In this document: piece after piece, positions 29,091 through 29,123 of the stretch
How positions within the stretch are numbered: position 1 is the first letter of the stretch
How the letters are laid out: each line of letters starts with the position of its first letter
DNA from: Syncephalis fuscata S228
Lineage: Eukaryota; Fungi; Zoopagomycota
Assembly: GCA_025786725.1 (NCBI GenBank)
Contig: JAHLTZ010000001.1
Coordinates: 124,001-188,000 of the forward strand
Length of the DNA: 64,000 bases
Direction of reading: 5' to 3'
The notes under the pieces: generated by a model
Seen by the model: the letters and a program-made list of their open reading frames with translations, nothing else
What the model was told of the DNA's origin: nothing
Database searches by the model: none
Program-made: the position numbers and the translations under genes

Positions 29091-29123
29091 TTTTGCTCCG
29101 AGTTTATCCGATAGTCACGTGAT
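29091..29123 (+). promoter_or_regulatory. Pol III terminator plus fixed-distance E-box (TTTTGCT-N15-AGTCACGTGAT)
   Basis: Same motif pair with the same 15-nt spacer at 42675-42707 behind tRNA-Glu. Confidence 0.6.

Follow-up and report, generated by a model that had tools for sequence, protein, structure and literature searches.

Why should two unrelated tRNA genes be followed, at the same distance from their RNA polymerase III (Pol III) terminators, by the same 11-nucleotide sequence? This question is raised by a 64-kb stretch of DNA (hereafter called the window), in which an initial annotation had described a shared cassette behind a tRNA-Pro gene and a tRNA-Glu gene. The coordinates of both cassettes agree with the window sequence and with ARAGORN gene calls (Table 1), and the two 15-nt spacers are, as originally described, equal in length and unlike in sequence. 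In each cassette, the CACGTG of the E-box starts 22 nt past the last T of the T-run. A search of the window also bore out the claim that the 11-mer AGTCACGTGAT has no exact copy beyond these two. The 8-mer TCACGTGA is likewise present twice in the window, both times within the cassettes, and CACGTG is present 13 times. A copy of the 11-mer with one mismatch (AGGCACGTGAT) is located at window positions 54917-54927, where it adjoins no tRNA gene.

Table 1. Coordinates and occurrences of the downstream E-box, its relatives, and associated Pol III genes. Positions without a contig name are those of the window.
Feature	Location	Strand	Basis or remark
tRNA-Pro(AGG) gene	29018-29089	+	ARAGORN and sequence
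Pol III terminator behind tRNA-Pro, T4 plus GCT (TTTTGCT)	29091-29097	+	after a single G; sequence and flank consensus
15-nt spacer behind tRNA-Pro	29098-29112	+	unconserved among tRNA families; sequence comparison
E-box AGTCACGTGAT behind tRNA-Pro, predicted bHLH-Zip (Cbf1-type) site	29113-29123	.	same offset in eight tRNA families
tRNA-Glu(TTC) gene	42597-42669	+	ARAGORN and sequence
Pol III terminator behind tRNA-Glu, T4 plus GCT (TTTTGCT)	42675-42681	+	after TTACC; sequence
15-nt spacer behind tRNA-Glu	42682-42696	+	unrelated to the tRNA-Pro spacer; sequence
E-box AGTCACGTGAT behind tRNA-Glu, predicted site	42697-42707	.	sequence
Downstream E-box, Pro-AGG			2 genes
Downstream E-box, Glu-TTC			1 gene
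Downstream E-box, Ala-AGC			1 gene
Downstream E-box, Gln-CTG			1 gene
Downstream E-box, Met-CAT			1 gene
Downstream E-box, Thr-CGT			1 gene
Downstream E-box, Val-AAC			4 genes
Downstream E-box, Gly-GCC (behind 5S)			6 genes
Upstream CACGTG, Arg-TCT	L025-L027, L053		at -63/-66
Upstream CACGTG, Leu-CAA	L047		at -53
Upstream CACGTG, Leu-AAG	L113, C46:215639-215648		at -48
Upstream CACGTG, one Arg-ACG gene	L075		at -62
Half-site AAAGCAGTCAC	C268:85568, C366:2221		upstream of 7SL
Half-site AAAGCAGTCAC	C46:215633		upstream of Leu-AAG
Half-site AAAGCAGTCAC	C308:97909		3′ of Val-TAC, 14 nt past the last T-run
Half-site AAAGCAGTCAC	C336:34023 / C339:320313		3′ of Glu-TTC, 14 nt past the last T-run
Half-site CAGTCACAC or complement GGTGTGACTG	L016/L017 (Ala-TGC), L062/L063 (Cys-GCA), L059/L060 (Glu-TTC)		14-17 nt past the last T-run
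Half-site CAGTCACAC or complement GGTGTGACTG	C290:136139 (L130)		~95 nt upstream of RNase P RNA
5S rRNA loci, examples	C4:7698-7816, C68:487421-487539, C120:4588-4706

Recurrence of the E-box behind tRNA genes

The genome assembly comprises 29.4 Mb in 371 contigs with ~37% G+C, and duplicated haplotype contigs are present in it. The named organisms in which a Cdc48 exon has its best matches are Linnemannia, Blyttiomyces, Rhizopus, and Podila, at 70-80% identity; two proteins with lower conservation matched no close relative, and we take the source to be an early-diverging fungus. A whole-genome search for box B followed by N25-55 and TCACGTGA yielded 13 matches, compared with one for a reversed-pattern control, and all 13 reside in tRNA 3′ flanks. 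The pattern TTTT-N18-21-GTCACGTGA, which carries no tRNA requirement, yielded 19 matches representing 17 distinct sites, compared with four control matches, and 15 of these 17 sites are located behind tRNA genes. A relaxed search for any CACGTG at terminator spacing produced 34 matches against 28 for its control, with the excess confined to tRNA-linked sites. This last search added two tRNA sites, one behind Thr-CGT (CTCACGTGA) and the other behind a second Pro-AGG gene on contig C246 (GCACGTGAT), and examination of the sequence at 16 of its non-tRNA-linked matches, which as a group do not exceed the control level, revealed no tRNA in any of them. In total, a downstream E-box is found at 17 tRNA genes from eight isoacceptor families, and one more Gly copy carries a mutated version of the motif (GTTACGTGA).

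Ranking by Rfam score provided an unbiased sample of 62 tRNA genes, of which 12 (about 19%) have CACGTG at +22 or +23 from the last T, and the E-box is present in eight of the 37 isoacceptor families sampled. No CACGTG was found elsewhere within 120 nt downstream of the sampled genes. When flanks are grouped into 59 independent clusters, 11 of these (from eight families) carry the E-box, although only ~0.02 hits at this offset would be expected among 59 flanks given the window background of 2e-4 per position. Chance is ruled out by the reversed-pattern controls (13 versus 1 and 19 versus 4), as well as by the lack of CACGTG elsewhere in the flanks. A scan of metagenomes for the motif returned a single unrelated tRNA-Ser contig with a spacing of 23, which is within chance expectation.

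These counts support the earlier expectation that the element would recur at a fixed place behind other, unrelated tRNA genes. The accompanying proposal of a tRNA 3′ element survives in part. The element is real and follows unrelated tRNAs, but it is not general, and the same counts (eight of 37 families and 12 of 62 sampled genes) establish that the motif is not a feature of most tRNA or Pol III genes.

Position relative to the terminator

One component of the cassette as initially described turned out to be commonplace. The T-run is followed by G in 43 of 45 flank clusters and then by C in 38 of 45, and the Pol III terminator consensus derived from these 45 clusters across the genome is T4-6 GCT[GC]CG. 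TTTTGCT is simply the general terminator context of this genome rather than part of a cassette, and the special part is the E-box.

Counted from the final T of the first T-run, the CACGTG starts at +22 in seven families, namely Pro-AGG (both paralogs), Glu-TTC, Ala-AGC, Gln-CTG, Met-CAT, Thr-CGT, and Val-AAC (all four copies), and it starts at +23 in the six Gly-GCC copies. This offset is the same for T4 and T6 first runs. The distance from the end of the tRNA to CACGTG, on the other hand, takes values of 24, 26, 27, 29, 29, 30, 30, and 32 nt. Because the offset from the last T is constant and the distance from the tRNA end is variable, the motif is anchored to the terminator, just as had been suggested from the first two cassettes. 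Relative to the last T, the motif is subject to a positional constraint of a single nucleotide. The Gly and Met genes each have two adjacent T-runs, and their motif is located 17 nt past the second of these.

E-boxes accompany weak terminators

A T4 tract is a weak Pol III terminator in yeast, where it usually depends on further T-tracts nearby, on RNA structure, or on Sen1 (PMC9278858). In the genome examined here, the first run is T4 in nine of 11 E-box clusters versus 13 of 48 others (p=0.0013), and a second or backup T-run occurs within 30 nt in four of 11 E-box clusters versus 35 of 48 others (p=0.033); both associations are modest, since they derive from 11 flank clusters in eight families, and the Gly and Met genes also have an immediate second T-run. 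Viewed from the side of the terminators, the 22 T4 clusters divide into nine with an E-box, 11 with only a backup T-run, and two with neither (T4 genes of this last kind are Arg-CCT and one Lys-CTT), while tRNA-Pro and Thr-CGT exemplify E-box genes whose T4 has no backup. These distributions suggest that the E-box substitutes for a backup T-tract. Furthermore, the enrichment of T4 and the depletion of backup T-runs among E-box genes lend indirect support to the idea that a protein bound to the E-box might serve as a roadblock to Pol III.

Second terminators of the form TTTTGC or TTTTTG are present in about half of the flanks. In tRNA 3′ flanks, a second T-run is commonly found 7-25 nt past the terminator consensus, and the U6 gene (C112:803029-803150) terminates in T8GC.

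Folding of the trailer RNAs revealed no shared or significant structure (z = +1.07, -2.21, and +1.23), and an RNA-level hairpin in the trailer was rejected for this reason. Because the trailers have no common RNA structure, a role for the motif at the DNA level is likelier than one at the RNA level.

Motif class and candidate binding proteins

Nearly all of the tRNA-linked 3′ sites (16 of 17) retain the full TCACGTGA palindrome, with a purine at -5 and symmetric purine/pyrimidine flanks. Fifteen sites read RGTCACGTGA; of the other two, the Thr-CGT site is CTCACGTGA and that of the second Pro-AGG copy is, on the opposite strand, ATCACGTG. The sites conform to the Cbf1/CDEI consensus RTCACRTG, in which the CACRTG core is preceded by T at -4 and by a purine at -5. 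The palindromes are extended by purine-rich 5′ and pyrimidine-rich 3′ flanks, which is what is expected of a strong homodimer site. Cbf1 and MiT/TFE-type proteins prefer TCACGTGA, and a palindrome with symmetric flanks is the textbook optimum for such dimers. The core and flanks of the tRNA-linked motif are the same as those of the Cbf1/CDEI site and of the MiT/TFE CLEAR element or M-box (GTCACGTGAC). However, the known Cbf1 and MiT/TFE sites are located at centromeres (CDEI) or in Pol II promoters of the sulfur, phosphate, and lysosomal regulons, and not behind Pol III terminators.

The genome yields 13 HLH matches at about 11 loci. One of these, at C317:692835-692981, has yeast Cbf1 as its best match (E=6e-23 over 105 residues of the bHLH-Zip region), and the basic region of this Cbf1 ortholog, HKEVERRRRE, is identical to that of yeast Cbf1. 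A second HLH protein, encoded at C2:493742-493906, finds its best match in MITF/TFEB/USF2 and is classed as a MiT/TFE/USF-like bHLH-Zip protein. The initial reading of RTCACGTG as a Cbf1/CDEI site is consistent with both the consensus and the presence of a gene for a Cbf1 ortholog. Judging from the motif and these genes, it is likely that a bHLH dimer reads the sites.

Ancestry of the flanks

Comparison of different families reveals no relationship among their spacers or distal flanks, apart from the general terminator consensus. In alignments of the Gly, Val, and Pro paralogs, the E-box forms a conserved island while the spacer varies, and similarity between flanks is gone 10-25 nt past the motif. 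Distal flanks are unlike even between Gly subfamilies. Because the E-box persists as an island amid varying spacers and distal flanks, these comparisons argue for selection. We conclude that the observation is real, highly non-random, and under selection.

The alternative that the motif has no function takes two forms. The flank might be shared by descent, through duplication followed by a later change in tRNA identity, or a mobile element that targets tRNA genes might end there. Among paralogs of a single family (Gly, Val, or Pro), the flank has clearly been inherited by duplication. Between families, however, there is no likeness in spacers or distal flanks beyond the terminator consensus, and a neutral palindrome of 8-10 nt would be expected to decay as the spacers have. 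The end of a tRNA-targeting transposon, which the initial annotation had named as the finding that would overturn its proposal, requires shared sequence past the motif. We found no common sequence beyond the motif behind unrelated tRNA genes, of the sort that a transposon end or SINE tail would leave, and no repeat continues past it. On general reasoning, Pol III-derived retrocopies would also be expected to lack DNA past the T-run. The unrelated spacers and distal flanks between families thus rule out a transposon end or an inherited flank. The reading without function has already been largely refuted, and we consider the chance that it is correct to be close to negligible.

Two further observations concern sequences near or resembling these genes. 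Counting from the C of CACGTG, the tetranucleotide TGG(C/T), noticed post hoc, is located 12-14 nt downstream at the second Pro-AGG copy (L097), Ala-AGC (L077), Met (L056), Thr-CGT (L011), and Gly (L005), and 13-15 nt downstream at Val (L007/L008). It might represent another short element on the distal side of the E-box. In addition, a repeated unit with a perfect box B and a TTTTGCTCC terminator is found at C75:13144-13174, C187:10588-10618, C202:9899-9929, and C278:2056-2086 (L115, L127). This unit received no ARAGORN tRNA call and matched no Rfam family, and it could represent a Pol III unit of the tRNA-like or SINE type.

Upstream copies, half-sites, and other Pol III genes

CACGTG, mostly in the form of TCACGTGA, also precedes tRNA genes of four other families, where it is located directly 5′ of a TATA-like stretch and between -48 and -66 relative to the mature 5′ end (Table 1). 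An upstream copy can have no termination role for the gene that it precedes. Considered together, the upstream and downstream sites may indicate that the factor acts more generally, either as a boundary protein or as an activator.

Half-site variants containing GTCAC, which were also noticed post hoc, are found in the same downstream zone as the E-box. The 11-mer AAAGCAGTCAC flanks Pol III genes at six hits (four loci), and the other eight of its 14 hits are in unrelated sequence. The variant GGTGTGACTG resembles a T-box half site. No match to box B (GGTTCGANNCC) was found in the 3′ flanks, where the motif is GTCACGTGA.

A full E-box is absent from the U6, 7SL, and RNase P RNA genes. Each of the 22 listed 5S rRNA genes is arranged head-to-tail, 7-8 nt upstream of a tRNA gene, and no stand-alone 5S gene was seen among these loci. 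The tRNAs that follow 5S are Asp-GTC, Gly-GCC, Ile-AAT, Lys-CTT, and Glu-CTC, but the E-box is found only in the Gly units and is absent behind the 5S-tRNA-Asp, 5S-tRNA-Ile, 5S-tRNA-Lys, and 5S-tRNA-Glu-CTC units.

Local genes and transcripts

The available RNA data consist of one RNA-seq run (X1) in the form of assembled contigs, which show splicing and not RNA ends. These contigs reveal GT..AG introns of 51-115 nt. A spliced gene on the minus strand (29367-30188, with introns of 51-56 nt) converges on tRNA-Pro and ends ~245 bp from its E-box, and a very highly covered gene is located at about 27500-28050. The Cdc48 gene, which has five introns, runs from about 30.7 kb, and its start is ~1.6 kb away. 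The tRNA genes of the window sit in stretches of 2.5-3 kb that lack ORFs of at least 70 aa, except for one that overlaps tRNA-Pro. The ORF-poor stretches, the convergent neighbor, and the distance to the Cdc48 start all argue against the E-box being the promoter of a nearby Pol II gene. A crude ORF-based survey, which is a weak test, revealed no consistent orientation of the nearest downstream ORFs. A promoter for a downstream Pol III unit was also rejected, since nothing is conserved beyond the motif and T-runs occur too early. At the second tRNA-Pro copy, one RNA contig of low depth crosses both terminator and E-box, with the proviso that such contigs cannot show where RNAs end.

A roadblock for Pol III?

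Among the three models that remain live, the best supported is that the bound protein assists termination as a roadblock. According to this model, a selected, high-affinity palindrome of the form (A/G)(A/G)GTCACGTGA(C/T) would be bound by a dimeric bHLH-leucine-zipper protein, for which the Cbf1 ortholog is the first candidate and the MiT/TFE/USF-like protein is the second. The site would be held at a fixed distance past the Pol III terminator in a subset of tRNA genes, where the bound dimer would be a physical obstacle that halts Pol III reading through a weak T4 within a few nucleotides of the tract. Polymerase halted ~4-5 nt past T4 would be in backtracking range of the U-tract and acceptor-stem hairpin, and it might then backtrack into this U-rich, hairpin-proximal region and be released. 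The protein would take the place of the backup T-run found at most other tRNA genes, and the result would be a Pol I-style terminator, with hairpin, T-rich element, and DNA-bound roadblock, on Pol III genes. The bHLH binding, the block to Pol III, and the better termination or recycling are steps that we infer. By analogy with Reb1 and TTF-I at Pol I terminators, it is reasonable to speculate that the bHLH dimer is a fail-safe roadblock for Pol III, and we place the chance of this somewhat short of even. The more elaborate proposal, in which a Cbf1-like dimer after a minimal T4 enforces termination, and perhaps recycling, as part of a bipartite Pol III terminator and has replaced the backup T-tract at approximately one-fifth of the tRNA genes of this early-diverging fungus, strikes us as somewhat unlikely.

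Pol III normally transcribes through bound TFIIIC, which speaks against a roadblock, and the motif is also present upstream of Arg-TCT, Leu-CAA, Leu-AAG, and one Arg-ACG gene, with a half-site upstream of 7SL. Moreover, with a reach of 15-16 bp, the stall would fall 4-5 nt past the T-run and not inside it, and yeast Cbf1 is only a weak roadblock to Pol II (PMC5052057).

The resemblance to known systems is greatest for Pol I. This polymerase pauses in T-rich sequence 15 bp upstream of a Reb1, Nsi1, or TTF-I site, and the combination of an upstream RNA hairpin and a bound factor leads to backtracking and release (PMC12366685). The same order of hairpin, T-rich tract, and protein site is found in the Pol I terminators of yeast (Reb1/Nsi1), mammals (TTF-I), and Xenopus (Rib2) (PMC12366685), and the counterpart of the hairpin in the genes examined here is the tRNA acceptor stem. 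These genes likewise have a T-rich element, which a putative protein site follows at a constant 22 nt, or 23 nt in Gly. The differences are substantial. The polymerase here is Pol III, which normally terminates on T-runs alone, and the site is a bHLH-Zip E-box rather than the Myb-like site of Reb1 or TTF-I. Pol I pauses 15 bp ahead of its protein site, whereas here 19-20 nt separate the last T from the edge of the 10-bp site, and the distance of the motif from the last T-run is 14-17 nt in genes with two T-runs or GTCAC half-site variants. Furthermore, only a subset of genes is involved.

Roadblocks are also known for Pol II, where tightly bound proteins such as Reb1, Rap1, Abf1, TFIIIB, and, weakly, Cbf1 halt the polymerase about 16 bp from their edge (PMC5052057). 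Those cases involve the NNS and exosome pathways, and their sites are not locked to a T-run. In the literature that we searched, there is no case of a Pol III roadblock at tRNA terminators, and searches of full texts turned up no account of an E-box or Cbf1 site that is tied to tRNA terminators. In a study from 2000 (EMBO J 19:6823), Wang, Bai, Hsieh, and Roeder reportedly found that NF1 just past human Pol III terminators affects termination and reinitiation; this work is cited in PMC3141230 and PMC13475603. The likeness to our case is that a sequence-specific factor of the Pol II type has its site just past the terminator, although the factor family (CTF/NFI) and the organism differ. To our knowledge, CTF/NFI proteins are confined to animals, and we know of no strict spacing rule for NF1. 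The external B box (exB) of Dictyostelium is likewise an additional, lineage-specific element that many tRNA genes carry in their 3′ flanks. However, exB is a second copy of the TFIIIC box B, whereas the E-box has no similarity to box B and is anchored to the T-run.

Alternative explanations

Two alternatives to the roadblock also involve a protein bound at the E-box. A Cbf1-like general regulatory factor might mark the edge of a nucleosome-free tRNA gene, working from either side, and it might thereby stop incoming Pol II or replication-associated enzymes and shield the Pol III complex. The presence of the motif on either side of tRNA genes (eight families downstream and four upstream) is in keeping with such a boundary, as are the lack of any further CACGTG in the flanks that were sampled and the spliced gene that converges on tRNA-Pro. 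In yeast, Cbf1 causes subtle pile-ups of Pol II and Okazaki fragments, and general regulatory factors and TFIIIB act as roadblocks (PMC5052057). However, a boundary has no need to be placed to the exact nucleotide relative to the terminator's last T, it leaves the enrichment at T4 terminators without backup T-runs unexplained, and the orientation of downstream ORFs in our crude survey is inconsistent. We regard this explanation as unlikely. Alternatively, the bHLH protein might contact TFIIIB, TFIIIC, or terminating Pol III and raise initiation or terminator-coupled reinitiation, perhaps tying a subset of tRNA genes and the 5S-tRNA-Gly units to growth or nutrient signals. An activator would suit the upstream copies that directly precede TATA-like stretches, which are the expected TFIIIB sites, and the copies that follow 5S-tRNA-Gly dicistrons, and E-box-linked action of Myc/Max has been described at 5S and 7SL genes (PMC4482074). 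It would not account for the T-run, and not box B, being the reference point of the exact spacing, for the presence of the motif at only about a fifth of tRNA genes, or for the lack of a full E-box at U6, 7SL, and RNase P RNA. Our estimate is that activation or recycling of this kind is distinctly unlikely.

In a further alternative, some factor other than a bHLH dimer, such as one of the PSE/SNAPc-like or T-box-like kind, would recognize the GTCAC core, in which case the palindrome would be a double site. Consistent with this, AAAGCAGTCAC lacks the second half-site where it lies 5′ of 7SL and behind Val-TAC and Glu-TTC, and it has 14 genomic hits, compared with four for the control, of which six of the 14 adjoin Pol III genes. 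The related CAGTCACAC and GGTGTGACTG are found behind Ala-TGC, Cys-GCA, and Glu-TTC, as well as upstream of RNase P RNA, and AGTCAC is present in 13 of 45 flanks compared with full CACGTG in 10 of 45. These half-site observations are post hoc and few, however, and more than half of the AAAGCAGTCAC hits (eight of 14) are in unrelated sequence. Given also that the full TCACGTGA palindrome is retained at 16 of 17 sites, a reader outside the bHLH class seems quite improbable.

Implications

Pol III termination is usually taught as a factor-independent process for which the T-run alone is sufficient. Recent work in yeast has revealed leakage at short T-tracts, which depend on help from Sen1, RNA structure, or secondary T-tracts. 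In eight independent tRNA families, a site of the transcription-factor type, fixed to the terminator to the exact nucleotide, accompanies the weakest T-tracts, and this offers a natural setting in which protein assistance to Pol III termination or recycling can be tested directly. The genome also supplies natural paralogs with and without the motif, including the degenerate Gly copy, that can serve as built-in controls. If the roadblock proposal is true, it would provide the first sequence-specific roadblock terminator described for Pol III and a new job for Cbf1, and it would connect the Pol III system with a conserved E-box factor of the Cbf1 or MiT/TFE type.
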